DNA of 64,000 nucleotides from Macrostomum lignano (Eukaryota). Below are positions 7,779 through 29,885 of this stretch, one piece after another. The notes under the pieces are model-generated. The model made no database searches and was not told where the DNA came from. It worked only from the letters and a program-made list of their open reading frames with translations. The stretch lies in contig NIVC01003555.1 in NCBI GenBank assembly GCA_002269645.1, positions 1 to 64,000 on the forward strand, in the 5' to 3' direction. A program made the translations under genes and the position numbers. Each line of letters starts with the position of its first letter. Within the stretch, counting starts at the first letter, position 1.

Positions 7779-10700
7779 TCACTTGTCGGACTTGACGCTG
7801 CCGTTGCTGAGCGACGCCATGGGGATCCGGTTGCTGTTGTGGTCGGCCTTGGCGCCGCCGTCGCCCGCACCGCCGCTGCCGCCGCCCAGGCTGGGGTCGG
7901 AAGCGACCCGCCTGCTGTACACCGTGTCCTCTTCGTCTGAGCTCAGGCTGAAGCTCATGCGGCCGCCGGACTCGTTGCCGTTGTTCAGCGGGGCGTAGAA
8001 CACCTGCGGGTTGGGGCGGCCGGCGTCTCTGTGCCTGGCCTGAACTGCTGCCTGGCCTCCATTATACTTTCTATCCCAAGCATTTCAATCACCTACTCTC
8101 TCCCACTCGCCCTTTCCTTTAAGCAAAAACAACCCGAAGCACCAATCGGAAGCACCAAGAACACGACCGGAAGCACCAAGGACACAACTGGAAGCACCAA
8201 GGACACAACTGGAAGCACCAAGAACACAACCAGAAGCAGCAAGAACACAACCGGAAGCACCAAGAACACAAATGGAAGCACCAAGAACACAAATGGAAGC
8301 ACCAAGAACACAAATGGAAGCACCAAGAACACAGCCGGAAGCACCAAGAACACAACAGGAAGGACCAAGAAACTCAGCCGGAAGCACCAAGAAACAACCG
8401 GAAGCACCAAGAACACAACCGGAAGCAGAAAGAACACAACCAGAAGCACCAAGAACACAACCGGAAACACCAATAACACAGCCGGAAGCGCCAAGAACAC
8501 AACAGGAAGGACCAAGAAACTCAGCCGGAAGCACCAAGAAACAACCGGAAGCACCAAGAACACAACCGGAAGCAGCAAGAACACAACCGGAAGCACCAAG
8601 AACACAAATGGAAGCACCAAGAACACAAATGGAAGCACCAAGAACACAAATGGAAGCACCAAGAACACAGCCGGAAGCACCAAGAAACAACCGGAAGCAC
8701 CAAGAACACAACCGGAAGCAGAAAGAACACAACCAGAAGCACCAAGAACACAACCAGAAGCACCAAGAACACAACCGGAAACACCAATAACACAACCGGA
8801 AACACCAATAACACAACAGGAAGCACCAATAACACAACCGGAAGCACCAATAACACAACCGGAAGCACCAAGTAGACCACCAGAAGCATCATAAACACAA
8901 CCGGAAGCACCAATAACACAACCGGAAGCACCAAGTAGACCACCAGAAGCACCAATAACACAACCGGAAGCACCAAGTAGACCACCAGAAGCACCAATAA
9001 CACAACCGGAAGCACCAAGTAGACCACCAGAAGCACCAATAACACAACCGGAAGCACCAAGTAGACCACCAGAAGCACCAATAACACAACCGGAAGCACC
9101 AAGTAGACCACCAGAAGCACCAATAACAGAACCGGAAGCACCAAGTAGACCACCAGAAGCATCATAAACACAACCGGAAGCACCAAAAAGACAACCGAAA
9201 GCAGCAGAAGGCCTCCAATTAAGAAATATTCCTCTCACCTTATCCCTTGACCCGCCGCCGCCAGCCATCATAGCCGCAGCTTTCCTCAGCCGGCGAACTT
9301 TGCTGCCGCTGCCCGTCCGCAGGTGAGCAGCCGCAGCCGCAGCGCTGGCCCGCCGATAGCGCAGGCAGCAGTACAGCAGCCAGACCGCGGCGCAGAAGCC
9401 CAGCAGGCTGATGGTCACCCCCAGAGACACGTACACCACCGACCAGTCGCAGTTGGACTCGCCGTCGCCGAATCGAACACGCAGCGGATTCTCCATCCAG
9501 AAGGAGGCGCAGACGCACTGTCTGGTGGAATTGTCGCAGTAGCCCCTGTCCGAGCAGCCCAGCTGGCAGACCTCGGTGTGCAGCTCCAGCACCGGGAACT
9601 CCAGCAGGGTGGCTGGCAGCCGGCGCTTCAACACGGCGGCCAGCCGAGGTCCCGGCAGGTAGGTGCCGTTGGCGAAGCCGGCCGACAGGCGCATGACGAT
9701 GCTGGCCTGCCTCGGCCGCAGACCCAGCAGGCGCAGGTTGCAGCCGGGGTGCGGGCCGCGCAGAGTCAGCTGCATCTGCGACATCAGGTTGGACAGGTCC
9801 GACTGGCGCAGCGCCGACGGGTCCGCCCGAAGCTCAAGGCTGGCCACCGAGGCGGCGTGCGGCCAGGGCCGGACAAGGATGGCCGCATCGGCAGTCCCGG
9901 TGGCGCCTTCGGAGTCCTTGACGGTCAGGCGGAAACTGTAGCGGCCGGGCAGCAGGCCGAGCAGCAGCAGGCGGGGCGACGCGTCCGAGCCGTTCAGCAC
10001 CTGCCCGACGGCCAGGGAGACGTCTTGCCTGCGGCGGGTCGGAGGCGGGGGTCATTTAAGGTCAATTAGCGCTGGAATGAGGTCTATCTGGGGTCATTCT
10101 TCACTTTCTAAGAAATCAGGTCACTCATTCTATCTGAAAAATGAGGTCATCTGGGGTTACTTTAAGGGATAATCTAGAGGTCATTCTGAGTTCAGCCTAC
10201 ACTATGTAGGTATAATGGGGTCATCTAAGGTCGCTGTCCGACCTCCGAATAGCCAACAATCCCCGCACGGCGCACCTGGTCCACTTGTATTCCACAATGC
10301 CCTTGTCGTCCCAGCTCTTGGAGGCGTCAAGCGCAACCAACGTAGCCCCGGTACCGTCCATGTCGACAACCCGATCGCCACCGGCATCGGCCTTCGGCGC
10401 CTGATTGGGGCCCGGCTTGACCGTGACGGTGACTACCGCCGACCCGACGCCGCCGTCCAGATCGACAGCCTCGGCTCGCAGCTTGTAGACTCCGGCCTGC
10501 AGGTTGGTGAGGGTGACGCTGGGCTGGGTGGCGTTGGCCAGCTTGGCGCTGCCGGGGCCGGTCAGCAGAGTCCAGCGCCACGACTTCACGCCGGTGTCGT
10601 CAACGGCGGACGCGTTCAGCACCAGACGGGTGAGCGGCAGTTCGACCTGAAATTTCATAGCGTTGGGTGGCGCATAGCCTTCTTAAATTTGTAAATCTCG

Positions 10701-13700
10701 TACTTTTGTGAATTTTGCGTACTTTAGTGCATTATAAGTACTTTTGTGCATTTAATGTACTTTTCTGCATTACATGTACTTTTGTGACTTTGTGTACTTT
10801 TGTGCTTCATATGTACTTTCGTGAATTTTTGTGTAATTTTGTGCATTATATGTATTTTTTGCATTATATGTTCTTTTGAGACTTTTGCGCATTATATGTA
10901 CTTTTGTGAATTTTGTTTACTTTTGTGCATTACATGTACTTTCGTGAATTTCGTGTACTTTTATGCATTTTATGTACTTTTGTGCATGTTTGTTTTAAAC
11001 TCTAAACATGATTTTGACCATTTTTTGCATCGTTCCTCCCACCCGATCCATCGAATGTACATCTATACATCCCATGTACATTATAACCCTTGTGTATATC
11101 CTAATATACACTGTACATTCTAAGTAACTGGTTTACATTTTAGTTTAAGCAGATACAATGAAATCACTGACGCCAACTCACAGTCAGCTCTGGGGGCAGC
11201 AGTGTCACCACTGGCAAAGCATTCTTAGGCCTGCGTTTAACCAGCACGTTGACGGTTGCCGAGTCCGTCTGGCCGCGGGCGTCAGTGACGGTCAGTTCGA
11301 ATGCGTAATCGCCTTCGACTAGGCCGGACAAGTGCAGGACTGGCGTGTGCACTCCCTACGGTGGGGTGGCGGGGAGTCGTCAAGTGCTCTTGTGTGAGCT
11401 TACTAGGAATTAGAAAGTGCTTTGAAATATTTTAACGGAAATGGGTAATGTAAAAAGGAAGTTGGTTTTTTATCAGCCTAAATACCGGAAGGTGGTGCTT
11501 TGAAGGCCTAATCTAAAGGCTGGAAGTCGGTGCTTTAAATGCCGGAAGTTGATGCTTTAAAGGCCGGAAGTTAATGCTTTAAATTCCGGAAGTTAATGCT
11601 TTAAATGCCGGAGGTTGATGCTTTAAATGCCGGAAGTTGATACTTTAAATGCCGGAAGTTGATGCTTTAAATGTCGGAAGTTGATGCTTTGAAGGCCGGA
11701 AGTCGATGCTTTAAATGCCGGAAGTTGATGCTTTGAAGGCCGGAAGTCGATGCTTTAAATGCCGGAAGTCGATGCTTTAAATGCCGGAAGTTGATGCTTT
11801 AAATGCCGGAAGTTGATGCTTTAAATGCCGGAAGTTGATGCTTTAAAGAGCCCAATCTTAAAACCGGAAATCGATGCAATAAAATTGCGTAATTAAATGA
11901 CCGGAAGCTGGTGCCACAAGGGCAAAATAAACGATCCAAATCAAAGCAGACAAACTGCCTACCTGCATATCGGCGCTAAGATGGCTGCCCCCTTTCTGCC
12001 GCCACATATAGCTGACAATGCCGTGATCATCTGTGCTGGCATTGCCGTACAGAGTGATGTTATTCTGAGGCAGGTAGATGACGCTGCTCTGGCCAGCGCT
12101 GGCCTTGGGCTTGTCGTCCGGCTCGGGAATGACAGTGATGTTTGCCGTGGCCGAATCGCTCAAACCTTTGGCGTCCTGCACAGTCAGTCGGATCACGTAG
12201 AAGCCGGCTTTGAGGTTGTTTAACTGGAGGATCTGCTGGTCCTGGGAGACGCTGTGCAAATCCTGGGCCGTCAGCGGGCCGTCCACCACCTGCCAGTGGT
12301 AGGACTCGATCTTCTGGTCTCCGTCAACGCTGCCGCTGCCGTCCAGGATGGCGTTGTTGGGCAGCTGGATGGATAAGGAGGCCGGTTTGATCACCGCCTT
12401 TGGCGGCTTGCTCTTGTGCTTCGCCGGTTTCACCGTTACCATGACAACGGCTTTGCCAACGCGATTCGAATCCGTGTTGTCAGTGACGTCGACCTGCGAG
12501 TAATCGGGAAAGGATTTGCACACACATGAGCGGATGTAGATACGAGTATAGAGGATTGGCACACAACTGACCGGAAGTGGATATAGAGGATTGGCACACA
12601 ACTGACCGGAAGTGGATATAGAGGATTGGCACACAACTGACCGGAAGTGGATATAGAGGATTGGCACACAACTGACCGGAAGTGGATATAGAGGATTGGC
12701 ACACAACTGACCGGAAGTGGATATAGAGGATTGGCACACAACTGACCGGAAGTGGATATAGAGGATTGGCACACAACTGACCGGAAGTGGATATAGAGGA
12801 TTGGCACACAACTGACCGGAAGTGGATATAGAGGATTGGCACGCAACTGACCGGAAGTGGATATAGAGGATTGGGACGCAACTGACCGGAAGTGGATATA
12901 GAGGATTGGCACGCAACTGACCGGAAGTGGATATAGAGGATTGGCGCGCAACTGACCGGAAGTAGAGATAGAGGATTTGCACAAAACTGACCGGAAGTGG
13001 GTTGAGGATGCGCGCACTAACGACCGGAAATGGGTTAAGGAATTACACTAATGACCGGAAGTGGATACAGAGGATTTAACACTAATGAACGGAAGGTGTG
13101 GATAGAGAAACTATTCATTACGCGCTGAAACTAGCTAATCTACTAATAGTAGACTAATAAGTAGCAATTGTTTATTTTTCCTGTCTCTAAGTGAAAAAAT
13201 ATGTATGTAATAATTCTTCACAGTTAATCCTTTCGAGACTCGCGCAAGTTTGAGTAACTCGGTTTAGGAAAGTGGGGAAAAAGAAACACTTCAGTGAACG
13301 GAGACTAGGGGTAGAAATTGTGCAGCATTGCATAGCTGGGGCACGCAAACTATTAGAACTGCAACAGCGAGGAAGCCTTATAACTACTGCCCACCCCCAC
13401 ACAAGCAGCCAGTTAATTAATTCTTTAGCGCCAGAACGGAATGAGCCAGTTGTTAAAAGTGCACTCAACTCAGAGAGTCAAGTCGCGTCCTTGACTTCAC
13501 TATGTGGCGAATATTAAATAGTGGCCAGTATTGAAACTTTATTGAAAAAACTTGAAAGCTTCAGCAGTTAGAAAAATGACAACACACGCCGTACAAAGTT
13601 AGAGAAATTTCTACTTATAAAAATTGAATTAATAAACTCTCCATTTCAGTGGGCCAGTTTCAAATGCCAGATCAGTTTGAATTTGATCGAATCCACAGGT

Positions 13701-16700
13701 GTTCCAGGTCAATATCGAACTCCAGGTATGCCAGGAGTCAATACCTAATCCCAGGTATGCCAGGAGTCAATACCTAATCCCAGGTATGCCAGGAGTCAAT
13801 ATGAAATCCCAGGTATGCCAGGGGTCAATATGAAATCCCAGGTATGCCAGGGTCAATATCGAATCCCAGGTATGCCAGGGTCACTATCGAATCCCAGGTA
13901 ATCCAGGAGTCAATATTGAATCCTAGGTATGCCAGGAGTTAATATCGGATCCCAGATGTTCCAGGTCAATATCGAATCCCCGATATGCCAGTTATGCCAG
14001 AAGTCAATATCGAATCCCAGGTATGCCAGGGGTCAATATAAAATGCTAGGTGTTCCAGGTCAATATTAAATCCCAGGTATGCCAGGGTCAATATCGAGTC
14101 CCAGGTGCTCCAGGGGTCAATATCAAATCCCAGGTATGCCAGGGTCAATATCGAATCCTAGGTATGCCAGGGGTCAATATCGAATCCCAGGTATGCCAGG
14201 GGTCAATATTGAATCCCAGGTATGCCAGGGTCAATATCGAATCCCAGGTATGCCAGGGTCAATATCGAATTCCAGGTGCTCCAGGGGTCAATATCAAATC
14301 CCAGGTGTTCCAGGGGTCAATATCGAATCCCAGGTATGCCAGGGGTCAATATCGAATCCCAGGTATGCCATGAGTCAATATCGAATTCCAGGTGCTCCAG
14401 GGGTCAATATCAAATCCCAGGTACTCCAGGGGTCAATATCGAATCCCAGAAATGCCAGGTGTCAAGTTGAAACCCCAGGTATGCTAATCAGCAAAGGATA
14501 AGCTCACCTGCAGAACGTATTTGCCTTCAACCAGCTCGCTAAGCTTCAGGCTAGCTGTATTCCGGTTTTGGAACTGGCCCTTCCTGGGTCCCGAGATCAC
14601 CTTCCACGAGTACGCCAGACGCTTGGCAGCGGCCCCCGTGGGCTCCGGGATGATGGAGGCGTGCAGCTCGATGCTGTTGAGAGGCAGCTCGATGGTGCGG
14701 TTGCTGCCGGCGCTAACAATGAGCTGCTCGCGCTTGCTCGGAGCTGGGCGCGGGAAAAAGGGAAGCGGAGAGGGCGCCAATGCAATTAAACTGCGCGGGT
14801 TTATCCTCAGGTTGATTCACAAGCACGAATTTGAGCATGTGAAATAAAAATAAAATATTCTGGTGTTTCATGGAAAATCCGAGATTATTGATAAAAATCA
14901 TCTCATACCTCAGAGGGTAAATAAACTGGTCAAAAACCACAAAACTTAATTGATATAAACTATTTTTCGTAAATCGCAAATCGAAAAAATGAAATAAAAT
15001 TCAATGCCCAGATTTAAATGCAGTTAATAATAGACTTTTTAAAAAACTCACTTTGTAAACTTGAATCTAAATTATCATTATCTCAATCCCACAATCACAA
15101 TTCCAGATTCCTAATTCCAGATTCCCGCAATCGAAAATCTAGAATACCATTATCCCAACTCCAGAACCTCATTATCCCAACTCCAGAACCTCATTATCCC
15201 AACTCCAGAACCTCATTATCCCAACTCCAGAACCTCATTATCCCAACTCCAGAACCTCATTATCCCAACTCCAGAACCTCATTATCCCAACTCCAGAACC
15301 TCATTATTCCAACCCAGAACCTCATTATCCCAACTCCAGAACCTCATTATCCCAACTCCAGAACCTCATTATCCCTATTCCAGAACCTCATTATCCCTAT
15401 TCCAGAACCTCATTATCCCAACTCCAGAATCTCCTTATCCCAACTGCAGAATGCCAACAATCTCAGTCTAGAGTGCTTCGCCAAACCTTTTTGCGGCAAA
15501 CGATTTGAAATTGATTGACAATACAGAGCCAAAGCACAATAGTGAAGGGCTCCGGTCTGCAGCACAGCAACTCAGCACGGGTATTGTCAAATAATTTGCT
15601 TGGCTAAATTAGGCTACACTAATAAACTGGAGCCACTGTTGCTGGGGGGGATTATAAATGCATTATAGAAGAAGTTCAGAAGCCCAGCTGGAGCAGGTCT
15701 CCCTGGATCAAGAGGATTAAGCTAACTATGGAAAATAGAAACTTAGAGGCAGCTTGAGGGCAGTCTCGCAGGCACGTAAGGAGTACGAGCCATTGTGAAC
15801 TCAATAAAGTAACTCGTATATAACTACTAAGCATATCGATCTGTGCCGAATGAAATGCCCGAAGCCGCTCTGAGCAGGGAAGCGGGAGGGGGAGACCCGG
15901 TTACTTACTAGAGCTGCTCAAAGCTGTCTCTTCTTAATCCCCAGTGGGTAAAAATGATTAGATTAGATTAGCAGAAGGCTAAGGCAGTAAGCATGGCATT
16001 ATGGTGAGCGCCAGGGTGAGAGGGTTAGGCTGGTTGACTTAATCACGTCAAATCACTCAGGTCGAACTCCGAACCTGTGCAGTGCAATTAACAAAAAAAA
16101 AATTCGACAAAATCCAAGAAACAAAGGAAAATTCTAACTGGTTGCTGGCGGCGCGGTGGTGCCGGAGACAGCGGCTGAGTCTGTTGGCTGCTCAGACGAG
16201 TTTGAGCCAGCCGCAGGAGTTGCAGAAGTTGCTGAAGCAACTGTGTCGCCTGTTTCTGCAGAAGCCGACTCGTTGGTTTTGCCTGCCGCTGTTTGAGTTG
16301 TCACGCTATTGGCAGCTGGGCGTGATGTGTGCGTTTGTGAAGTTATTATTAATAACGGGTTATTAGCATTGTTACTTTTAAATAAAATCAAGACAACATT
16401 AAATATTAAGTATTTTAAATATGATAGGCGAGTCACCATGGCATAGCGAAAGCTTAGTTAAAATATGAAGTTATTAACAAAAATAAATGGACTAAATGGT
16501 CAAGTGAAAGCTTATATAGCTACAGCCCGGAACACTGGCTATGCAGTCAGTCACAGTTTTAGACTTATTTGATTTCAAATTTTAACTGTTTGGCAAGCGG
16601 GTTTAATAACATAATCCGTGTCTAAAAATGAAATATGCAATGTTGAACATTCTGGATTTTTAGCAATGCATTCTGTCACCATCCGCTTCTCTTCATGTCA

Positions 16701-18049
16701 CCATCCGCTTCTCTTCATGTCACTATCCGCCCTTCTCCTGTCACTATCCGCTTCTCTTCATGTCACTATCCGCCCTCTTCCTGTCACTATCCGCCCTCTT
16801 CCTGTCACTAACCGCCCTCTTCCTGTCACTATCTGCCCTCTTCCTGTCACTATCCGCCCTCTTCCTATCCCTATCCGCCCCTCTTCCTGTCTCTATCCGC
16901 CCTCTTCCTATCCCTATCCGCCTATTCCTGTCACTATCCGCCCTCTTCCTGTCACTATCCGCCCTCTTCCTGTCACTATCCGCACTCTTCCTATCCCTAT
17001 CCGCCTATTCCTGTCACTATCCGCCCTATTCCTGTCACTATCCGCCCTCTTCCTATCCCTATCCGCCTATTCCTGTCACTATCCGCCCTCTTCCTATCCC
17101 TATCCGCCCCTCTTCCTGTCACTATCCGCCCCTCTTCTTGTCACTATCAGTCACCTTTTCTGTTTCTTAAACCCTCTACCTCTCTATCCCTCTCTTTCCG
17201 CTCTCTGCCCCTTTCTTTCCGCTCTCTACCCCTTTCTTTCCGCTCTCTACCACGCACCCTCCAATCAACAATAAAAAAATCTAGGGAACAGAGCTACGTA
17301 AAGCAATAAACATAAATACTAAAATCTAAACCGCAAGCAAAAGCCTCACCAGTTGTGACAGCAGTAGCAGTGGGCGCCGCTGTTGTAGCAGCAGCCGCGG
17401 TAGTCACGACTAGCGGCGCCGGCTGGCACCCGCTGGAGGACCGCCGGACGAAGCCGCTGCGACATTCGCAGAAGCCCTCGCTGCCGCTGCCGCTATCCGA
17501 GGCGCCGAAGTTGCACTCTTCGCCAGGGCCGCAGTCGCCCAGGGTGCTCATGCTGCAGGATTTCTTAGCCTGGCAGGCTGAGCTCATGCAGTAGTGCCCG
17601 TCGCCGCAGGCGGAGTCGCTGCCGGCGGCGCACACGGAGCGCAGCGGCAGGTAGACGGCCTTGTCGGCATCGGCAGATTTTCGCCGGCGAGGCTGACAGG
17701 CCAGCGCCGATCGGCAGCTGACGATGAAGCACTCGCTCTTGTACAGCAGGGCCGAGTGGCAGGCGGGGTTGGCGCAGCACAGGCTGGCGCAGCCGGGCAA
17801 GTCGCTGATGTTGGCGAATTTCTTGTACACGCCCGCCAGCTTACCGGAGCGCGGGGCGGCCCGCGGCAGGCCGTCCAGCCGGAGCAGCTGCGGCTTCGGC
17901 AGAGCGCAGGCGTCGACGCCATCGCCAGCAATGCCGGCAGCGGAATTTGCCGGCACTTCGACTGCGGTTGCCATGGGAACCACTATTATTGTTGCCGTTG
18001 CTAGGGCAACTGTCAGAGCCAGCAGAGGTCTATTAGATAATAAAGGCAT
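7779..18049 (-). CDS. KIAA0319L: KIAA0319/KIAA0319L (AAVR)-like type I membrane protein, ~1067 aa: signal peptide, MANSC, Cys-rich module, Ser/Thr stalk, 5 PKD domains, EGF-like region, TM, cytoplasmic tail. Exons: 18049-17350, 16315-16139, 14743-14508, 12493-11963, 11355-11182, 10646-10276, 10028-9239, 8003-7779.
   Basis: The MANSC pattern is CASLCCANPACHSALLYKSECFIVSC. Five PKD repeats are present (e.g. LDGSGSVDGDQKIESYHW, LYGNASTDDHGIVSYMW, GDYAFELTVTD, LDASKSWDDKGIVEYKW). CSDRGYCDNSTRQCVCASFWMEN...GESNCDWSVVYV precedes the TM, as in this family. All introns are GT-AG with matching phases. Confidence 0.93.
8130..9200. repeat. ~20-21-bp minisatellite CACAACCGGAAGCACCAAGAA/CCAATAA (KIAA0319L last intron)
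   Basis: Tandem array; source of the spurious long ORFs 8031-9186. Confidence 0.95.
10700..10985. repeat. Degenerate TGTACTTTTGTG-based minisatellite
   Basis: Tandem degenerate units in an intron. Confidence 0.8.
11480..11850. repeat. 22-bp minisatellite GCCGGAAGTTGATGCTTTAAAT
   Basis: Tandem copies, most containing CCGGAAGT. Confidence 0.95.
12545..13065. repeat. 35-bp minisatellite TATAGAGGATTGGCACACAACTGACCGGAAGTGGA
   Basis: ~14 tandem copies, most containing ACCGGAAGTG. Confidence 0.97.
13700..14480. repeat. ~30-bp minisatellite CCAGGTATGCCAGGGGTCAATATCGAATC
   Basis: Tandem array in a KIAA0319L intron. Confidence 0.95.
15150..15450. repeat. 22-bp minisatellite ATTATCCCAACTCCAGAACCTC
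   Basis: Tandem copies. Confidence 0.95.
16660..17240. repeat. 21-bp minisatellite CCGCCCTCTTCCTGTCACTAT
   Basis: Tandem copies in KIAA0319L intron 1. Confidence 0.93.
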
Positions 18050-21000
18050 TGGGCAATCAATCTGCCTGGATGACTGGCTGAAAATGTGTTCGGGTTTTGT
18101 GCATTCAAATTTGATCTCGGTTTGTTTTACTGTTATCATATATTTTACTCAATTTACTGTTCAAACTCTTGGACATATGATTGAAGGAATGCATCTGACA
18201 TACCTTGTGCTGCAAACCAACAATTTAATTCCATGCACAGATACCTTCATTTGCAGTTTGTTGTGATTATTCATGAAAGCCAACCCCCCCCCCTATGTTA
18301 GGGTAACCAAAGGCTTTCACTAAATTATTATAATTATTAAGCCCAAGCCCAAAGAAGACAAAGTGCATATCCACATACATATTTATATACCAGCTATGGG
18401 ATAAATACTCAAATAAATGTATTATTTCATTATCTAAACTAATACCCTTACCTAAAATAAGTCCAATAACTAATACCTAGCTTGCATAAAAATAATTATA
18501 TATAAGTTTAAAATATATTATTCTCTTGACAATATTTATTCCCAATAGACTTTTATACTGTTGCGTATTGAGAGAATATATACAAACTTGCTCATATTAA
18601 TATTGATGTACTATTATCATTTTTCATATTGTCTGTTTGGTAAAGCCACTCTCTTGTCCCCTTCAAGTTTCACTTTTGTCTATGTCCTATCTCTCTGCAG
18701 GCATTCATATATTCTAGAGCATTGCTCCCTTGTTTTGTTTCCCCAAAATATACTTGAACCTTAAGGCAAATCCACAAGAATAAAAGTGCATCAGCATTTC
18801 CCGCTGCTTTAATTCTTTAGAAAGAATCTACATTCTCTTGATAACTTTGCATGAGCCACTTTATATACTAACCATCACATTTAAATCATCTTAAATTTAA
18901 ATATATAATATATGTAATTTTAACAAAAATTATATTTCTATAAAGGCTAAAAGTATCTTAATATAACAAATCCTATATCACATTGTGTTTGACATCATCA
19001 ATATTGCTAAATATATGAGTTAGCCAAGTTCTTAGTCTAAGATTCTATTCTTTAGCCAAAAAATCTTTTAGAATTTAGGATCAACTTAAACAATCTGATT
19101 ATTAAAAGCTTTAAGATTTATAAGACCAAATAATAATAATGATATTATGCTTTAAGCTTAGTGTTTAGAGTGACAAGTCACGCGACTTTTTGTGCCTACC
19201 AAAAATTTTTGCACCTGACTTTTCTTGAGGTTCATATGTAAGTATTTTGCATCTACAATGAGATATAAAAAGCCACCTTATAACCTTATTGAATATTTTC
19301 CTTTCTATATGCTATAAAAACGAAAAAACAAGCACAAAAGAAAATCTGTTTACAGGGCTACTTCTATGCCTAACTTCCAAAAAATTTCTTTTTTTTCTGG
19401 CAAAAAAATTGACTAAACTTTTTGTGCCATTTAGATACAATAATTTGTACCATTGTTACAATTTTTTTGTATTTGCATTTGGCAACATCAGATTTGCACC
19501 TTACTCCAAACACTGCTTAGGCCTTAAAGTTTGTGGCTAGATTTTCTATACTAGGCATTCCCTACTGATTATTTATTATTCCAAAGTATTGAGTAGGTCA
19601 ATGGAATTTTTGCCATTGGAATCCCAGCTAGCTAGGATATTGCCATCACAATAACTAAGTACTTTAACTAAGACATTAAGTCATTGAGCCTATTGAGTCT
19701 ATTAGATTTTAAAAATGCTACGGGTATAACTTGAATACTATGTTGATCAACTCTTTTTTAATTTTTAAATATTATATAATTATCTTTGGACTTTGAAAAT
19801 CAAAAGCTAAAATTTTTTTTTACTTTTGTGTTTGTCATATTTATGCTTCTAATAGCTAAAATTGATTAGTTTGTTAGTAAGTTAAAAACAAAGCCAAAGG
19901 TCTTTATAGTTTTGTCTATTAATGTTATATACCAATTGTTTTTTAGACCCTAGTAGGCCTAAACAAGTTGTTTTGTGCACATTGCATAGCCTATTGAAAA
20001 CCAAAATGTCTTAAAAATTAGAATTAGAATAAAAGAACAAACCGGCCCAATTTTGCTTGATATAGGCCTAATATTGATGATTTGCTTAACTATTAATAAA
20101 TACAATGTTTATAAAATGAAAAAAATAAACAATAAGCCTATTAAGCTATATAAGCCTAGATTTAACAAGCCTTAAATTTCAAAATCTTGCATATAAACCA
20201 GGATTGCAATTTTTTAATTTGTTGCATTGAATTATTTTTGTTTTTTTTTACAAAAAATGTGGTCTTATAAGTTACAATTTTAGGATTCTTGTATGACTAT
20301 ATTTTATTCTTATTAGGGCCTATATTATTCTCCTTTATTTTCACTTCTACATCCCACCTCACTTTAGTTTAGTTTAATAATGCATTTATAAATTCTCTGA
20401 CTCTATTGAGGGAGGGCATTGTATTACAAAAGTGAATATAAAGATTATGCTCTAGTAAGCTACAATTGTAACATTTTTGCAATCATTGCTATATCAATTT
20501 TATTTTTTGACTATTCTCTATTGGGTAGGCCCTATCATATTACAAAATTGATGCAAAATGTTAGATAGGCCTACTATATTATAAAATAAAAAATGCCAAA
20601 ACTGATTAATATATGGGCCTATTTATAATATATAGACATTTAGACTTGGTAAATTTAAGCCTTGATTATGACTATTTATAAGTATAACTATAACTAGGCC
20701 TACTTAAAATTTTGTTTTTTTCATATAAAAAAATTATGGGGGCCTAGGCCCTAATCAAACTTGATGGGGGCACCCTGAGCACCCCCTTTAAATATCCACT
20801 ACTGTCTTTATTTAGCTCTTTAATTAGGCTCTATTCCTTGAAATTGAACTTACACTTCTTTACAGTTATTGTAGTCTTACTATAAAATCAATTTAAATTA
20901 AGCCTAGTTAGGCCTAGTAGTGTTGTAATTCAATGTAACTTTAATTGATAGGCAAGCAACAGCCCATTTTTTGGCAATTGTTCATAGTCAGGACTCAGGA

Positions 21001-22255: not shown

Positions 22256-22410
22256 ATGTATCACGACAGGAGCGCTGCCGTGCTGACACCCGGCCTGACG
22301 CCAGACGGTCTGTCGGATTTCTTTGAGACGTCCATTAGGGTGGCTTCAGCCGGGAGATACCACCATTCGTGTTCCTCCTGGTGCTTGAATTGGTGCTGCA
22401 GACCGCGCTC
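22256..22410 (+). mobile_element. Degraded non-LTR retrotransposon reverse transcriptase fragment
   Basis: YHDRSAAVLT...DFFETS, then after frameshifts LQ-GDT and PFVFLLVLELVLQTAL. This corresponds to the RT motif GVxQGDxLAPFLFxLVLDxVL. The fragment is cut off by a pyrimidine satellite. Confidence 0.7.
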
Positions 22411-24352
22411 TCCCCTTCCCCTTCCGGCCCTTCCCCTCGGCTTAGCTCTCCCTTCCTCCATCTCTTCCTTCCCCCAGCTCTCTTTTCCTCCCAGCTCACC
22501 CCAAGCTTTCCCTTCCTTCCAGCTCTCCCCTAGATCTCCCTTCTCCCAATTTTTCCCTTCACCTAAGCTCTCCCTCCCCCCTGCAGCTCTCCCTTCCCCC
22601 AGCTCTCCCTTCCTTCCAGCTCTCCATTCCCCCAGCTCTCCATTCCCCCAACTCTCCCTTCCTCCAGCTCTCCCTTCCCCCAGCTCTCCATTCCCCCAGC
22701 TCTCCCTTCCTCCAGCTCTCCCTTCCCCCAGCTCTTCATTCCCCCAGCTCTCCCTTCCTCCCAGCTCTCCATTCCCCCAGCTCTCCCTTCCTCCCAGCTC
22801 TCCATTCCCCCAGCTCTCCATTCCCCCCAGCTCTCCCTTCCTCCAGCTCTCCCTTCCCCCAGCTCTCCCTTCCTCCCAGCTCTCCCTTCCCCCAGCTCTC
22901 CATTCCCCCAGCTCTCCATTCCCCCAACTCTCCCTTCCTCCAGCTCTCCCTTCCCCCAGCTCTCCATTCCCCCAGCTCTCCCTTCCTCCAGCTCTCCCTT
23001 CCCCCAGCTCTCCATTCCCCCAGCTCTCCCTTCCTCCCAGCTCTCCATTCCCCCAGCTCTCCCTTCCTCCCAGCTCTCTATTCCCCCAGCTCTCCCTTCC
23101 TCCAGCTCTCCCTTCCCCCAGCTCTCCCTTCCTCCCAGCTCTCCCTTCCCCCAGCTCTCCATTCCCCCAGCTCTCCCTTCCTCCAGCTCTCCCTTCCCCC
23201 AGCTCTCCATTCCCCCAGCTCTCCCTTCCTCCCAGCTCTCCATTCCCCCAGCTCTCCCTTCCCCCAGCTCTCCCTTCCTCCATCTCTCCCTTCCCCCAGC
23301 TCTTCCTTCCCCCAGCTCTCCCTTCCTCCCAGCTCTCCATTCCCCCAGCTCTCCCTTCCTCCAGCTCTCCCTTCCTCCATCTCTCCCTTCCCCAAGCTCT
23401 TCCTTCCCCCAGATATTCATTTCCCCAGCTCTCCCTTCCCCCAGCTCTCCCTTCCCCCAGATCTCCCTTCCCCCCAGCTTTTCCTTCCCGCAGCTCTCCT
23501 TTCCCCCAGCTCTCCATTCCCCCAGCTCTCCATTCCCCCAGCTCTCCATTCCCCCAGCTCTCTATTCCCCAGCTCTCCCTTCCTCCCAGCTCTCCCTTCC
23601 TCCATCTCTCCCTTGCCCCAGCTCTTCCTTCCCCCAGCTCTCCCTTCCTCCCAGCTCTCCATTCCCCCAGCTCTCCCTTCCTCCATCTCTCCCTTCCCCC
23701 AGCTCTTCCTTCCCCCAGCTTTCCCTTCCTCCCAGCTCTCCATTCCCCCAGCTCTCCCTTCCTCCAGCTCTCCCTTCCTCCATCTCTCCCTTCCTCCATC
23801 TCTCCCTTCCTCCATCTCTCCCTTCCCCCAACTCTTCCTTCCCCCAGATCTTCATTTCCCCAGCTCTCCCTTCCCCCAGCTCTCCCTTCCCCAAGATCTC
23901 CCTTCCCCCAGCTCTCCCTTCCTCCATCTCTCCCTTCCTCCATCTCTCCCTTCCCCCAACTCTTCCTTCCCCCAGATCTTCATTTCCCCAGCTCTCCCTT
24001 CCCCCAGCTCTCCCTTCCCCCAGATCTCCCTTTCCCCCAGCTTTTCCTTCCCGCAGCTCTCCATTCCCCCAGCTCTCCATTCCCCCAGCTCTCTATTCCC
24101 CCAGCTCTCCCTTCCTCCCAGCTCTCCCTTCCTCCATCTCTCCCTCCCCCCAGCTCTCCCTTCCTCCATCTCTCCCTTCCCCCAGCTCTTCCTTCCCCCA
24201 GATATTCATTTCCCCAGCTCTCCCTTCCCCCAGCTCTCCCTTCCCCTAGCTCACCCCAAGCCTTCCCTTCCTTCCAGCTCTCCCCTAGATCTCCCTTCTC
24301 CCAATTTTTCCCTTCACCTAAGCTCTCCCTCCCCCTGCAGCTCTCCCTTCCT
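22411..24352. repeat. ~1.95-kb polypyrimidine satellite (CCCAGCTCTCCCTTCC / CCATTCC units)
   Basis: Almost entirely C/T on the + strand; source of the 732-aa and 560-aa spurious ORFs. Confidence 0.97.
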
Positions 24353-24681
24353 CAAATGATTTTTTCGCTGTTCTCACTGTCAGATAAGTTATCACCTAAT
24401 CTGTCAAGACACTTCAAAGTAATGCAACCCGCATATCTTTGCTTGACAAGATAACCGCCCACAGGAGAGCTCTCACGTACTCATAGATCAACGTACATAT
24501 CTAACATATATTTGTTGGGTCCAAGGGTCGATTTGAGTCGCACAAGATCGAGGCACTTATCGACGGCATTTCCAATCAATTTGAAGTTAAGGGATATAAA
24601 ATTAGGGACAACACCGCGTGCCCTTATCTACCTGTCGATTTGATGTGCGAATTTGTCATCCGGTTGCTGCCAGAAGATTTC

Positions 24682-24689
24682 TATAAATA
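24682..24689 (+). promoter_or_regulatory. TATA box of the Cys-rich peptide gene
   Basis: TATAAATA precedes a short leader. It is followed by donor AAG|GTAAAC (24786) and acceptor CCTTCCAG| (25201), two bases before the ATG. Confidence 0.6.
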
Positions 24690-25076
24690 CAGCAACTGCA
24701 TCACGCAAACTATTAACTAAACTAAACAAGCTAAAATACTAAAATATTTTGAAGAAATATACGGCAGCAACGAATAACCAAGAAGGTAAACAGCTGGTGT
24801 GTGTTCATTGCTTATTTGCGTGTTTTTTCGTGTCTTTTTGTCTCTATTTTTCTCTTTGTCCCTCATCTCGGCATTTCCAGCTCTTATTCTCTTTCTGACT
24901 CTCTTTTTATATATATATATACTGGTATATCCAACTCTCTCCTTCACTGTCTATCCACCTTTATCTCAGTAGAACATAATCTCCCTCTATATATTTAAAT
25001 GAATATTTGTCTGTCTCGCCCATTCAATATTACTCTTTTTATCAATCTGGCTCGCATTCGTTCTTCCCCCTATCTT

Positions 25077-25145
<69 letters not shown>

Positions 25146-25202
25146 CCGTCTGTATGTCTGATTTTGCGACTGATGCCAAGCCTGATCCCCAATCCTTCCA
25201 GA

Positions 25203-25502
25203 ATGAAGTGCGTCTTCCTGATTCTCCTGGGACTGGCGGCCTTCATGGTGCAGCCGTCGGAGCAGAAGGTCAACTGGGGCATCTCGGTGGACCTCACGAA
25301 GATCATCAACTACGGCCTGAACAAGCTGGACACGATGTTCTCCTGCGCCAAGTACGACGGCGTCAGGGGCGCCGGCTGCTGGCACAACAACTGGGAGAAG
25401 CGGGACCTCATGTGCAAGAGGCTGAGCGCGTGCTGGTCCAGGCGGTGGTCCTACAGCCACAGCCTGCTGGGCGGCCGCTGCTACTGCTGCCACTGCCCTT
25501 GA
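25203..25502 (+). CDS. 99-aa secreted, cationic, Trp- and Cys-rich peptide (putative antimicrobial/defensin-like); single coding exon with a 5'UTR intron at 24786-25201
   Basis: The sequence is MKCVFLILLGLAAFMVQPSEQ-KVNWGISVDLTKIINYGLNKLDTMFSCAKYDGVRGAGCWHNNWEKRDLMCKRLSACWSRRWSYSHSLLGGRCYCCHCP*. It has a hydrophobic signal peptide and 8 mature Cys. GC3-rich codons match the other genes here. ATTAAA lies at 25551. Confidence 0.88.
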   Translation: MKCVFLILLGLAAFMVQPSEQKVNWGISVDLTKIINYGLNKLDTMFSCAKYDGVRGAGCWHNNWEKRDLMCKRLSACWSRRWSYSHSLLGGRCYCCHCP

Positions 25503-26289
25503 ACTGGCTGTCACTTAACATCCATTCTGTTGCTGTCGTAATGACAGGCAATTAAAAAGCAAATATACTTTAAGGTCTCGTTTGGTCAGCCTGCAAACCT
25601 TTGGCATTATAAAAGCAGCGGCTAACGGCCTTGAGTCTTATTTTTGCATTTTAATGAGTGATGAATCCACGGGTGATAGTGAATCACGAGTGATGGTAGT
25701 AGTAAGTAAGGTAATGTAATGCAATACGTGCAATCGGATGGCATGGTGTGGCACACGATTGCCAGATTTACCTAGTAGCTGATTATTAAAGACAACAATG
25801 CCAGTTGCCAATCTGAAGCAGGCTATTGAATAAATGCAGAAAATTAGGCCTAGCAGTGTCTCCGACTCCATGCAGCATGACCTATGTTTGATTTTCATTA
25901 AGTTCTCATATTCAAAGTATAGCCTTATCTAAGACCTTATCTAATGGTTCCTGTGAAAGTTTTTTAATATGTCACATTTGTAATATAGGCCTACAAGCTG
26001 TTGAAACCCGCGGATTTTGAACCCGGGGAATTCCAATCCCCAGAACTACTTTTGCATGTATTCTGAAATCTAAGACCATACACAAACAAATTAATGTTAG
26101 TAGGATAGAGGTAGACATAAAATGGAGCACATTCGTGTAAAATTAGAGTTTGAGGCAAACGTTGATATTGTTTGCTGGGGTACTCCACAGAATGCCAGGC
26201 AATGTCTGTCTCTGACTCTAAAACATGTATTGGCAAACTCTGGCCTCTCCCTGACTCTCCTATGTCCCTTGGATCCTTTAAAATTTCTA

Positions 26290-26934
26290 TCGTCTCTCTG
26301 TTTCCTTTCTTCTCTCTCATTCCTTGTCTCTCGTCTCTCCTCTCTCTTCTCTCCTCTCTTCTCTCGTATCTTCCCTCATCACTCCTCTCTGATCATCTCT
26401 CTTATCTCATCTCTTCCCTATTCTTTTCTCTCTCCTCTCCTCTCTCCTTTCTACTTTTCGTTTTCTCTCTGCTCTCCTCTCTCCTCTCTACTCTTTCGTT
26501 TTCTCTCTCCTCTCCTCTCTCCTCTCTCCCATCTTCTTTCGTATATTACCTCATCTTTCTTCTCTTTCATATCTCTTATCTCATCTCTTCCCTCTTCTTT
26601 TCTCTCTCCTCTCCTCTCTCCTCTCTCCCCTCTTCTCTCGTCTCTTCCTTGTCCTCTCTATTCTTTTCTCTCTTCTCTTAACTCTCTCCTCTACTCTCTC
26701 ATCTCTCCTCTCTACTTTTTCCTCTCTCTCTCCTCTCTCCCCTCTTCTCTCGTCTCTTCCCTCACCTCTTTCCTCTCTCTCTTTCCTCTCATCTCTTTTC
26801 TTGTTTTATCTCTTCTCTCTCCCCTCGTCGCTCGTCTCTTCCCTCACCTCTCTTCTCTCTCGTCCGCTCTTTCATCTCTCCTTTCTCTTGTTTTATCTTT
26901 TCTCTCTTATCTCTTCTCGTTACTCTCTGCTCTG

Positions 26935-27006
<72 letters not shown>

Positions 27007-27750
27007 TCTCCCATCTCTCTTCTCTCTACTCTCTCCCCTCTTCATTCTCCTATTTCCTCTTCTCTCTCCCTGTCTCTCCTCCCTCCTCTAGTCTCTGTAA
27101 TCTTTTCTCTCTTATCTCTCCTCTGTTCTCTCTACTCTCCCATCTCTCGTCTGTTCATCTGCTCTCTCATCTGTCATCTTTACTCTCTTATACGTTCTCT
27201 CACTTATCTCCTCTGTACTCTTCTCTTTCACCTCTTCTGACTCCTCTCTTTCCTTACTCCTTTCTTCTTTTCTCTTCCCTCTTCTATACTCTCTCTCCTC
27301 TATTATCTTCTCTTATCTCTCTGCACTCTCCTCTCACCTTTTTCTCTCGTCTCTTCTTTCATCTGTCTCATCTCTACAATCTCATCTCTTTCCTCTCTCC
27401 TCCTCTTTCCTTTACTCTCTCATCTCTCCTTTCTTCCCTCTTCTTTCACCACTCTCTTATCTCTATCTCTTCTCTTCTCACTCCTCTATCCCCCTCTTAT
27501 CTCCTCTCTTCTCTATCCTTTCTACTCTCTCCTCTCTAATCTCTCCTCTCCTCTTGACCCTCTGTCATCTTTTTTCTGCTTTCTCATCTCTACTCTCTTC
27601 TCAATCTTCTCTACTCTACTCTCTCATCGATCCTCTGTCTCATCTCTCCCTCTTCTCACCTTTACTCTTTCCTCTCCTTCCTTTCTCCCCTCCTCTCGCT
27701 TCTTCCTCCCTTCTTCTCTGCTCTCTCCTCACCACTTTTCCTTTTCACTC
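26290..27750. repeat. Degenerate CT-rich low-complexity tract including perfect (CT)n
   Basis: Pyrimidine-rich tract; a similar tract lies at 28510-29110. Confidence 0.9.
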
Positions 27751-27754
27751 TCAT

Positions 27755-29885
27755 CTGGCCCGCAGCCATGAGCTGGATTCTTTATCTGGCCTTTGAGATA
27801 AAAATCTGCCAATCCCTGCTTCGAAAGTACTATCATGGTTGTTATCATTTCTCATGCTTTAATCACGTCATTTTTCTGGCCAATAAGCAGCCCTGAGAGG
27901 AATTTGTGTATCTCCATTCTCCAGCTCCACCACCACAGTCTGCAGCAGTCTAACAACCAAGGAAATACGCATTTCTTAGGAGGCCATTTAAATTTTAAAG
28001 TTACCTTATGCGAATCTTAATGTTAAAATTTTCATGGTGTAACTAATTTAGTAGGATTGCATTGTAATCAGTTATTCATTCATTTTTCGCTATTTTTATA
28101 AACCATCCCATATCGCCTTGATTTGCCATCCCTGTTTAACTGCTGCGACTTGTCTATACAGAGGACAGTAGTTTGAATCTCTCGCTAAACTCTCTCCTCT
28201 CTACGCCTCTCCACTCGCGGGGTACAGAGAAAGCTATTAAAAAGTTATTCCAAAACACTGTACATTCGCTATGTACATTGAGCCCTATCGCCTGATCCTT
28301 CGTCTGGGGGAATGAGTTGGATGAGCGGCAAACAACAGAAAAAGCAGACAAACTTCACATGCTTACAGTTTCTTTTTCGGTTGAGTTACAGAGTTAAAAC
28401 TTTACATTTAGATAGAGAATGGGTCAATGAAGAATTGTGTCAAGTTTGAAGTCAATCGCTTTACGTGGAGCAAACTTATGGCAGCTGAAAGTTATTCAAT
28501 TTTGAAACCCTTTTACTCTCCCATCTTTTATCTGTTCACTCTCGTCTCTGCTCTCTCATCCCCCTCTTTAATCTGGCATCTCTGTCTTATATGTTCTCTC
28601 ACCTCTCTCCTCTGTACTCTTTTCTTTCCCCTCTTTTGACTCCTCACTTTCCTTTCTCCTTTCTTCTTTTCTCTTCTCTTCCCTTTTCTATACTCTGTCT
28701 CCCTCTCTTCTCTCACTCCACTTTCCTCTCTCCGTTATCTCTCATCTCTCATTTCTCATCTCTCCTTCCACCTCTCTCATCTCTACAACCTTAGAGATGT
28801 AGAGATGTATCTTTATCTCTTCTCTCTTCCCTTTACTCTCTCATCTCTTCTTTCACCTGTTTCCTCTCTGCTCTTCTCTCTGCTGTCTCCTCTCTCCTCT
28901 CATCTGCAGCTCTCTGCTCTCTCATCTCTACTCTCTCCTCTTGCTTTTCCTCTCTCTCCTCTTGCTTTTCCTCTCTCCCCTCTTCTCCCCCTCTCTCTCA
29001 TCGTCCTCACCCCCTCATCTCTCCTTTTATCTTTTATCTTTTCTTTTATCCCCTCTGTCGCCTCTCCTCTCTTTGAATCGTCTATTCCTTCTTCTTTCCA
29101 CTTTCATCTGCCCCTCAGCTATGAGCTGGATTCTTTATCTGGCCTTTGAGGTAAAAGTCTGCCCATCCCTGCTTGGAAAGCCAGTTTGTGGGACGTAGTA
29201 CTCTCATGGTTGTTCTCATGCTTTGATCACGTCATCTTTCTTGCCAATTTGTAGGCTGCAGCCCTGAAAGGAATTTGTGTATCTTCAGCTCCACTGCAGT
29301 CTGCATCAGTCTAACAACCAAGGAAATACGCATTTCTTAGAAGGCCATTTAATATTTACACAGTACAGTACCTTTGAAAGAAACCTAAAATTTCCATGGT
29401 GTGCCTAATTTAGTAGGGTTGTATTGCATTGCATGGCATCGCCTTTTCATAAATCTTTCGCTTTTACAAACCATGCTGGATAGTGGTATTAGTGAATTCC
29501 CTCGATTTGCCAATTGCCAATTGCCATCCACTGTTAAACTGCTGCAGAGTTTGCCAATACAGAGGGGAGGGCAGTGGTTAGAATTTCTCACTAAACTGTT
29601 ATGGCTAAATGTAGCCTCTCCACTCTCGGGGTGGAATTCCAAAACACTGTACATTTGCTATGTACATTCAGCCCTATCGCCTGACCCTTCGTCTGGCTCT
29701 GGGGGAATGAGTGAGAGGCACAAACAACAGAAAAAGCAGACAAACTTCACATGCTTACAGTTTCCGTCCTGATTGAGATACAGAGTTGAGACTTTACATT
29801 TAGACAGAGAATAAGTTAATGAAGAATTGTGTCAAATTTGAAGTTAATCGCTTCACGTGAAGCAAACTTATGGCAGCCCAAAGTT
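27755..29885. repeat. Diverged local duplication: ~750-bp block at 27755-28510 repeated at 29110-29885
   Basis: Shared strings include atgagctggattctttatctggcctttgag, agtctaacaaccaaggaaatacgcatttcttag and aacagaaaaagcagacaaacttcacatgcttacagtttc. Confidence 0.9.

Follow-up and report, generated by a model that had tools for sequence, protein, structure and literature searches.

A small secreted cysteine-rich protein of Macrostomum lignano and its undescribed family, a candidate extracellular binding module

What does a short gene of the flatworm Macrostomum lignano encode, and is its product an antimicrobial peptide? The question arises from a 64,000-nucleotide stretch of the genome (contig NIVC01003555.1, positions 1 to 64,000, assembly GCA_002269645.1), referred to here as the window. 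A first-pass annotation made from the letters alone had singled out a gene at 25203-25502 on the forward strand. It described the product as an orphan, cationic, secreted eight-cysteine peptide with a mytilin- or myticin-like C-terminus and proposed a new flatworm family of antimicrobial peptides. The present analysis gives a different answer. The protein belongs to an undescribed family that extends beyond flatworms, and it is probably an extracellular, very stable binding or recognition module. From the comparison of sequences, this reading is given a probability of roughly 0.55.

The gene itself was read correctly. The coding sequence (CDS, 25203..25502, + strand) lies inside exon 2, which starts at 25202, and is an intact open reading frame (ORF) of 99 codons plus TGA. 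It runs from the ATG at 25203 to the TGA at 25500-25502 and encodes the 99-amino-acid protein MKCVFLILLGLAAFMVQPSEQKVNWGISVDLTKIINYGLNKLDTMFSCAKYDGVRGAGCWHNNWEKRDLMCKRLSACWSRRWSYSHSLLGGRCYCCHCP. The cysteine spacing reported before, C48-x10-C59-x11-C71-x5-C77-x15-C93-x-C95-C96-x-C98, was exact on re-reading, and a recount of residues 22-99 returned the same 12 K/R, 5 D/E and 5 Trp. The window holds one copy of the gene. The exact protein is present in the public protein collection, where the M. lignano hypothetical proteins BOX15_Mlig017780g1/g3 and BOX15_Mlig001810g2/g5 are 99% and 97% identical to it. The flatworm origin assumed in the first-pass annotation is therefore correct.

The N-terminus has the features of a signal peptide (25203..25265, +; amino acids 1 to about 19-21, an approximate cleavage region). 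Its hydrophobic core, CVFLILLGLAAFMV, comprises 14 residues with a mean Eisenberg hydrophobicity of 0.92, and AlphaFold2 (AF2) places a helix at residues 3-14; both support the secretory leader proposed in the first-pass annotation. A comparable hydrophobic leader opens every full-length family member. In many of them (P0009, P0010, P0012, P0016, P0023, P0040, P0042) the leader ends in S, G or A directly before Q-(I/T)P; glutamine may thus be the first mature residue and would then cyclise into pyroglutamate. The Macrostomum leader reads ...QPSEQ/KV.., and the cleavage position is not evident there.

Relatives were found with a profile of four Macrostomum sequences, run against 1.84 billion representative proteins. 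At E ≤ 1e-3 the search yielded 36 proteins, of which about 30 are true relatives; this count leaves out the M. lignano copies and two matches rejected as repeat-protein false positives (P0025 and P0039). HMMER E-values of the homologues range from 1e-62 to 1e-4, and homologues from other phyla reach values as low as 1e-17. A word-indexed search with the family alignment contributed P0042 and P0043 as sole additions and no further named protein, and a metagenome scan gave one further locus (L008). With some 30 true relatives, the protein is no orphan.

Nor is it confined to flatworms, as had been proposed. One member (P0016) is encoded on a contig of 4.87 Mb. The best named matches of the kinesin-5 on this contig all fall in Chironomidae and other Diptera, with 68% identity to Clunio marinus. 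Another (P0026) is the hypothetical protein WR25_04783 of the nematode Diploscapter pachys. These are the two members with a taxonomic placement; the others come from unannotated ENA, JGI and Logan assemblies, and the genes next to loci L005-L008, L013 and L014 were not taxonomically diagnostic. The homologues carry no functional name, Pfam model or structure. Pfam gave no match to the window protein at E ≤ 10, and for 25 scanned family members only scattered single-member noise at E ≤ 1 without a family match. The PDB sequence set contained no match to the single sequence, and none to the family profile at E ≤ 10. Literature searches for motif strings, gene identifiers, Macrostomum antimicrobial peptides and cysteine-rich secreted proteins returned nothing relevant. 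Judged by these searches, the family is undescribed and occurs, at a minimum, in flatworms, a nematode and chironomid midges.

Most members have 90-130 amino acids and share one architecture: a leader, a short conserved helix and a cysteine core with the signature ...FSCS[KR][YF]DGxAGCW[H]NxWxKRD..C..C....[WF]S[YF]....GGxCYCCxC. The window protein has the secretory leader and every conserved family position, and it scored 98 bits (E 6e-31) against the family hidden Markov model (HMM), whose underlying alignment (A3) includes it. Its cysteine-rich core (25344..25499, +; amino acids 48-99) comprises C48, C59-W-H-N-x-W-x-K-R67-D68, C71, C77, W82-S-Y84 and G-G-x-C93-Y-C95-C96-x-C98. Conservation is not limited to cysteines. 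C59, R67, C93 and C95 are invariant; of 28 sequences, 25 have D68 and 27-28 have an aromatic residue at each of positions 60, 82, 84 and 94.

The helix ahead of the core (25281..25340, +; amino acids 27-46) has the family consensus IPxxAxxYAxxKVDxxF. It had been described as an amphipathic segment in a two-part peptide. The first description holds in part: the segment is moderately amphipathic, with a helical hydrophobic moment of up to 0.51 for residues 27-47, and the moment of residues 27-44 was equalled by 3.9% of shuffled sequences. The net charge of residues 22-46 is just +1. The two-part design is not supported, given the co-conservation of the helix and the cysteine core as one module, with no dibasic site between them.

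The same unit recurs across the uncharacterised homologues (Mlig017780g1/g3, Mlig001810g2/g5, WR25_04783, the chironomid-contig protein and proteins from environmental and SRA data), which share the leader, the IPxxA..KVD helix and the core. They differ from the window protein in number and setting of the parts. Some have six cysteines, lacking either C71/C96 or C77/C98; some are tandem proteins, and one is fused to a trypsin domain. Two to three tandem cores each are found in P0043, P0021, P0033 and P0041. The fusion protein P0019, 321 amino acids from a JGI metagenome, combines a trypsin-like serine protease (PF00089, E 3e-21) with a complete module including the helix at 254-321, and is the sole multidomain context seen among the members. 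At the level of sequence, the comparison shows the module to be autonomous and conserved.

Selection acts on the gene within M. lignano and beyond. The window copy and its paralogue L002 differ by 12 synonymous changes and one non-synonymous change, a ratio of non-synonymous to synonymous rates (dN/dS) of 0.019. An orthologue from another sample (P0003 at locus L001) is 68% identical to the window protein, with a dN/dS of 0.20 and 8/8 cysteines kept. Its near-identical leader points to another macrostomid as the source. The 12:1 substitutions, the conserved promoter and splice sites described below and the intact orthologue show that the gene is real, constrained and, by these signs of selection, functional.

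M. lignano has the gene in at least three genomic contexts, along with one tandem pair 2.5 kb apart and one frameshifted copy. BOX15_Mlig017780g2 (P0004) agrees over the first 28 residues, after which another frame is read; it is either a frameshifted paralogue or the result of an assembly indel. An older UniProt model (P0008, A0A1I8JNR6) joins two frameshifted tandem copies. A 2820-amino-acid protein and a 510-amino-acid entry named "potassium channel subfamily K member 10" cluster with the 99-amino-acid proteins at 90% identity, which suggests that both are chimeric gene models.

The natural six-cysteine variants inform on the disulfides. The equivalents of C77 and C98 are both present in 28 domains and both absent from eight, with no discordant case (Fisher p = 3e-8). 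For C71 and C96, both occur in 24 domains, neither in ten, and two domains are discordant; these counts include a corrected anchoring of two sequences. From this co-occurrence we infer the disulfides C71-C96 and C77-C98; C93 and C95 would then be the partners of C48 and C59.

Structure prediction gave two models. The full-length AF2 model was built from a 25-sequence alignment and has a mean predicted local distance difference test score (pLDDT) of 71.5. The model of residues 27-99 was built from 28 sequences, with a mean pLDDT of 68 and about 78-86 in the core; across the two models, core values are about 78-92. Both models have a strand at 57-61, a helix at 64-73 and strands at 81-85 and 92-97, which gives a predicted strand-helix-strand-strand order for the module. 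The trimmed model has an extra short helix at 75-80, and C77 falls past the first helix. The N-terminal helix was modelled at low confidence in both (31-45). Foldseek searches of the full-length and trimmed models against PDB, and of the trimmed model against BFVD, retrieved nothing below E of about 0.9, and no PDB match below 1. The claim of a new disulfide framework stands, as no described family was matched in Pfam, PDB sequences or Foldseek. We know of no described framework like a CxCCxC strand tied on both faces.

The product would thus be a secreted mini-protein of roughly 78-80 residues with four disulfides, encoded by one of several near-identical paralogues. Its last strand, C93-Y-C95-C96-x-C98, would be linked to the helix region on one face through C71-C96 and C77-C98, and to the N-terminal segment on the other face, with C48 and C59 bonded to C93 and C95. 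Such a protein probably functions extracellularly, as a highly stable module for binding or recognition, and would contact a conserved target through a surface formed by W60, N62, K66, R67, D68, W82, Y84 and Y94. A specific contact, rather than bulk charge, is indicated by the conservation of R67, D68 and the aromatic residues, by a family net charge that ranges from -3 to +9 and by the purifying selection on the paralogues. Protease appendages and tandem arrays are typical uses of binding modules.

Several points weigh against the binding module. The idea draws on the conservation pattern and on fusions and repeats seen in a few environmental proteins, all unannotated. The co-occurrence counts ignore phylogeny, and the absence of a given cysteine pair may go back to only a few losses. 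The AF2 models are of moderate confidence only (mean pLDDT 68-72). The identifiers Mlig017780 and Mlig001810 did not occur in the full texts or supplements of the M. lignano literature searched, and these searches gave no transcript, expression-site or protein support. A directly acting antimicrobial peptide would fit the cationic charge of the Macrostomum proteins and their GxC hairpin just as well.

A cationic, membrane-active antimicrobial or toxin peptide, founding a new host-defence family with an amphipathic helix and a defensin- or mytilin-like cysteine domain, is the strongest of the other explanations, although distinctly less probable than a binding module. It would account for the secretory leader and for the net charge of the mature part, +6 in the window protein and +9 in the orthologue P0003. 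It would also suit a multi-copy gene that occupies several loci and includes a tandem pair and a frameshifted copy, and the extreme codon usage described below, which suggests high expression. However, the Macrostomum proteins are the most cationic members, and cationicity is not a family trait: the median charge is +2, and several members are acidic. The N-terminal helix, with its charge of only +1, belongs to the conserved globular module. Polar and aromatic residues other than cysteine are kept between flatworm, nematode and insect, and purifying selection on the paralogues is strong, two features that are unusual among the fast-evolving antimicrobial peptides.

The likeness to mytilin deserves a closer look. 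In a pairwise BLASTP comparison, residues 77-95 of the window protein align with residues 10-29 of mytilin B (sequence checked against PDB 2EEM) with 11/20 identities and an E-value of 0.002, valid for a single comparison. This local match favours an antimicrobial peptide, but at the family level it shrinks to seven columns (GGxCYC against RGRCYC) with an hhalign probability of 33%, and the family profile did not retrieve mytilin B (2EEM) from the PDB. The frameworks differ as well. Mature mytilins and myticins have about 34-40 amino acids with the pattern C-x3-C-x3-C-x4-C-x11-C-x-C-x-C-x2-C, whereas the window protein has a module of about 78 amino acids, twice the length of mytilin, with C-x10-C-x11-C-x5-C-x15-C-x-CC-x-C. 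The mytilin- or myticin-like C-terminus of the first-pass annotation is, as far as these alignments go, a short hairpin motif, without evidence of membership in that family.

There is also a resemblance to cysteine-stabilised alpha-beta (CSαβ) defensins and toxins, among them mytilin B (2EEM), drosomycin and plant defensins. Like them, the window protein is small, secreted and disulfide-rich, and its module is predicted to have the strand-helix-strand-strand order. A GxC motif opens the last strand, and a cysteine pair of the helix region appears, by co-occurrence, to be bonded in parallel to a CxC of that strand. The hairpin and the putative stapled CxC strand count in favour of an antimicrobial peptide. 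In contrast to the fixed CxxxC of CSαβ proteins, the spacing between C71 and C77 varies in the family from x2 (CKGC) and x3 (CKGRC, P0003) to x4 and x5, the last in the window protein, and 8-10 members have no equivalent of one of these cysteines. The last strand differs by having four cysteines (CxCCxC), the second face being tied to an N-terminal extension in the proposed map; such a two-faced framework is not met in the CSαβ families known to us. The Foldseek lists contained no defensin or toxin, in a method that is weak on mini-proteins and with models of moderate quality. Of the CSαβ fold, whose prediction had been suggested as a check, the models show the order of strands and helix but no structural match to a defensin. 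The earlier statement that the spacing does not fit canonical CSαβ defensins agrees with the absent helix CxxxC and with the lack of a defensin or toxin match by Pfam, PDB profile or Foldseek.

Macins and big defensins were likewise named as a misfit. They are also cationic, multi-disulfide, invertebrate host-defence proteins of similar size. Their cysteine pattern differs from that of the window module, and none of the 25 members scanned matched a Pfam profile of these families. Taken together, a host-defence role is plausible for the cationic Macrostomum proteins, with their charges of +6 to +9. An antimicrobial role is possible, and somewhat weakened by the variable charge, the near-invariant non-cysteine residues and the purifying selection. 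More speculatively, and with low confidence, the family may represent an ancient, protostome-wide, new four-disulfide fold with a double-faced CxCCxC strand, a microbe- or glycan-recognition and defence module whose cationic Macrostomum paralogues serve as antimicrobial effectors.

A secreted signalling ligand, similar to a peptide hormone or cytokine and recognised by a conserved receptor, is unlikely. The strong conservation across phyla, including charged and aromatic surface residues, the very low dN/dS among paralogues and the small, disulfide-stabilised protein with a signal peptide would all fit. The distribution is patchy, however: named matches are limited to M. lignano and D. pachys, and none comes from a well-annotated model genome among the matches listed. 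Protease fusion and tandem repeats are atypical for hormones, the gene has several paralogous loci and tandem copies, and prohormone processing sites are absent.

Slightly more doubtful still is a non-immune, tissue-specific secretory product, that is, a seminal-fluid or prostate protein or a component of adhesive glands, rhabdites or mucus. Prostate and adhesive glands of M. lignano reportedly express many short, secreted, lineage-restricted proteins, which would provide a precedent, and a multi-copy gene with highly biased codon usage would be in line with it. Reproductive proteins in Macrostomum are fast-evolving, whereas this module is conserved across phyla and has relatives in a parthenogenetic nematode and in midges. 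The gene identifiers were not found in the supplements of the reproduction-related-gene study searched. A chance ORF or decaying pseudogene copy, for which the location between satellite and simple repeats and at least one frameshifted paralogue (P0004) might speak, is highly improbable and already contradicted by the 12:1 ratio of synonymous to non-synonymous changes, the conserved promoter and splice sites, the intact orthologue and the homologues in other phyla with E-values down to 1e-17.

The first-pass annotation described a spliced, TATA-driven gene, and this was backed by conservation in the paralogous loci L002 and L003. An upstream block (GATTTGATGTGCGAATTTGTCATCCGGTTGCTGCCAGAAGATT, 24637..24679, +) is near-identical in these loci, with surrounding DNA that is far less alike. 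It is followed by the invariant TATA box TATAAATA (24682..24689, +), a putative promoter element. The non-coding exon 1 (5' untranslated region, UTR; 24710..24785, +) would start about 25-30 nt past the TATA box, and its end is set by the splice donor. The donor AAG/GTAAA, with the GT at 24786-24787, is common to the window, L002 and L003. The blastn block that covers this region (24515-24790) has 74% identity to the paralogues. The 5'-UTR intron (24786..25201, +) has 416 nt and GT...AG ends, both conserved, and contains a (TC)31 microsatellite at 25079-25141. Between the conserved ends its sequence cannot be aligned among paralogues, and its length varies. The AG acceptor at 25200-25201 lies one base ahead of the ATG and is kept in L002 and L003. 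Its context is ..ttccag/AATG in the window and ..tttcag/AATG in the orthologue locus L001, which retains the arrangement of the acceptor directly before the ATG. Downstream, the 3' UTR (25503..25660, +, end uncertain) has a conserved AATTAAA at 25550-25556, and the 90% identity with the paralogues extends into it to about 25655, that is, over about 150 nt. These features support a two-exon gene with a non-coding exon 1 and the entire CDS in exon 2.

Spliced-leader trans-splicing is common in M. lignano (PMC5730564). At this acceptor it is less likely than cis-splicing, because the GT donor, itself conserved and preceded by a conserved TATA box, marks the precise end of the conserved upstream sequence. 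The GenBank gene models of the M. lignano genome were built solely from RNA-seq and transcriptome assemblies (PMC5730564), and the annotated near-identical copies are thus indirect transcript evidence.

Two overlapping ORFs were rejected. One, of 167 amino acids and beginning at 24999, runs across the (TC)n microsatellite. A 175-amino-acid antisense ORF (24987-25514) is almost certainly an artefact of the high GC content at third codon positions (GC3). GC3 is 0.97 in the CDS (25203-25499) versus 0.63-0.86 in neighbouring coding ORFs, and the UTRs and intron around it are AT-rich (GC 0.33-0.40). The extreme GC3 would be compatible with high expression.

The gene had been placed in decayed DNA. 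Its flanks consist instead of satellite and simple repeats. Directly upstream, a minisatellite of 1.8 kb (22444-24256) comprises about 113 copies of the 16-bp unit AGCTCTCCCTTCCTCC with 84% matches. It yields spurious long ORFs on both strands, such as one of 732 amino acids at 22256-24454 without a Pfam match. A related stretch lies upstream of the paralogue L002 (window 24069-24351 versus L002 8975-9243, 83% identity). Degenerate CT-rich simple repeats follow downstream at 26327-27730 and 28836-28999 and produce a Ser/Leu-rich pseudo-ORF of 372 amino acids (26122-27240).

Further away, the window contains parts of large genes. On the minus strand, at about 8000-18139, exon-sized ORFs encode K319L-like PKD domains (11861-12982) and, at 17297-18139, the N-terminal domain of KIAA0319; together they appear to form a KIAA0319-like gene. 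The plus strand has large ORFs with multiple cadherin repeats, similar to FAT/CELSR, between 43845 and 50621 (43845-45113, 45339-47207 and 49935-50621). An ORF with EGF and calcium-binding EGF domains is located on the minus strand at 58759-59826.

Small secreted cysteine-rich proteins are often overlooked or labelled "hypothetical". What is new here is the definition of a family and a testable disulfide map for a module without a Pfam model or solved structure, on which no literature was found. The family spans flatworms, a nematode and insects, and the module also turns up appended to a protease and in tandem arrays. M. lignano offers transgenesis, RNA interference and in situ protocols, and the function of the whole family could be approached in one tractable animal. 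To our knowledge, very few effectors are known in flatworms. Should the protein prove to act in defence or recognition, invertebrate innate immunity would gain a new disulfide framework; should it prove to be a ligand, a conserved signalling molecule would be added to those known.

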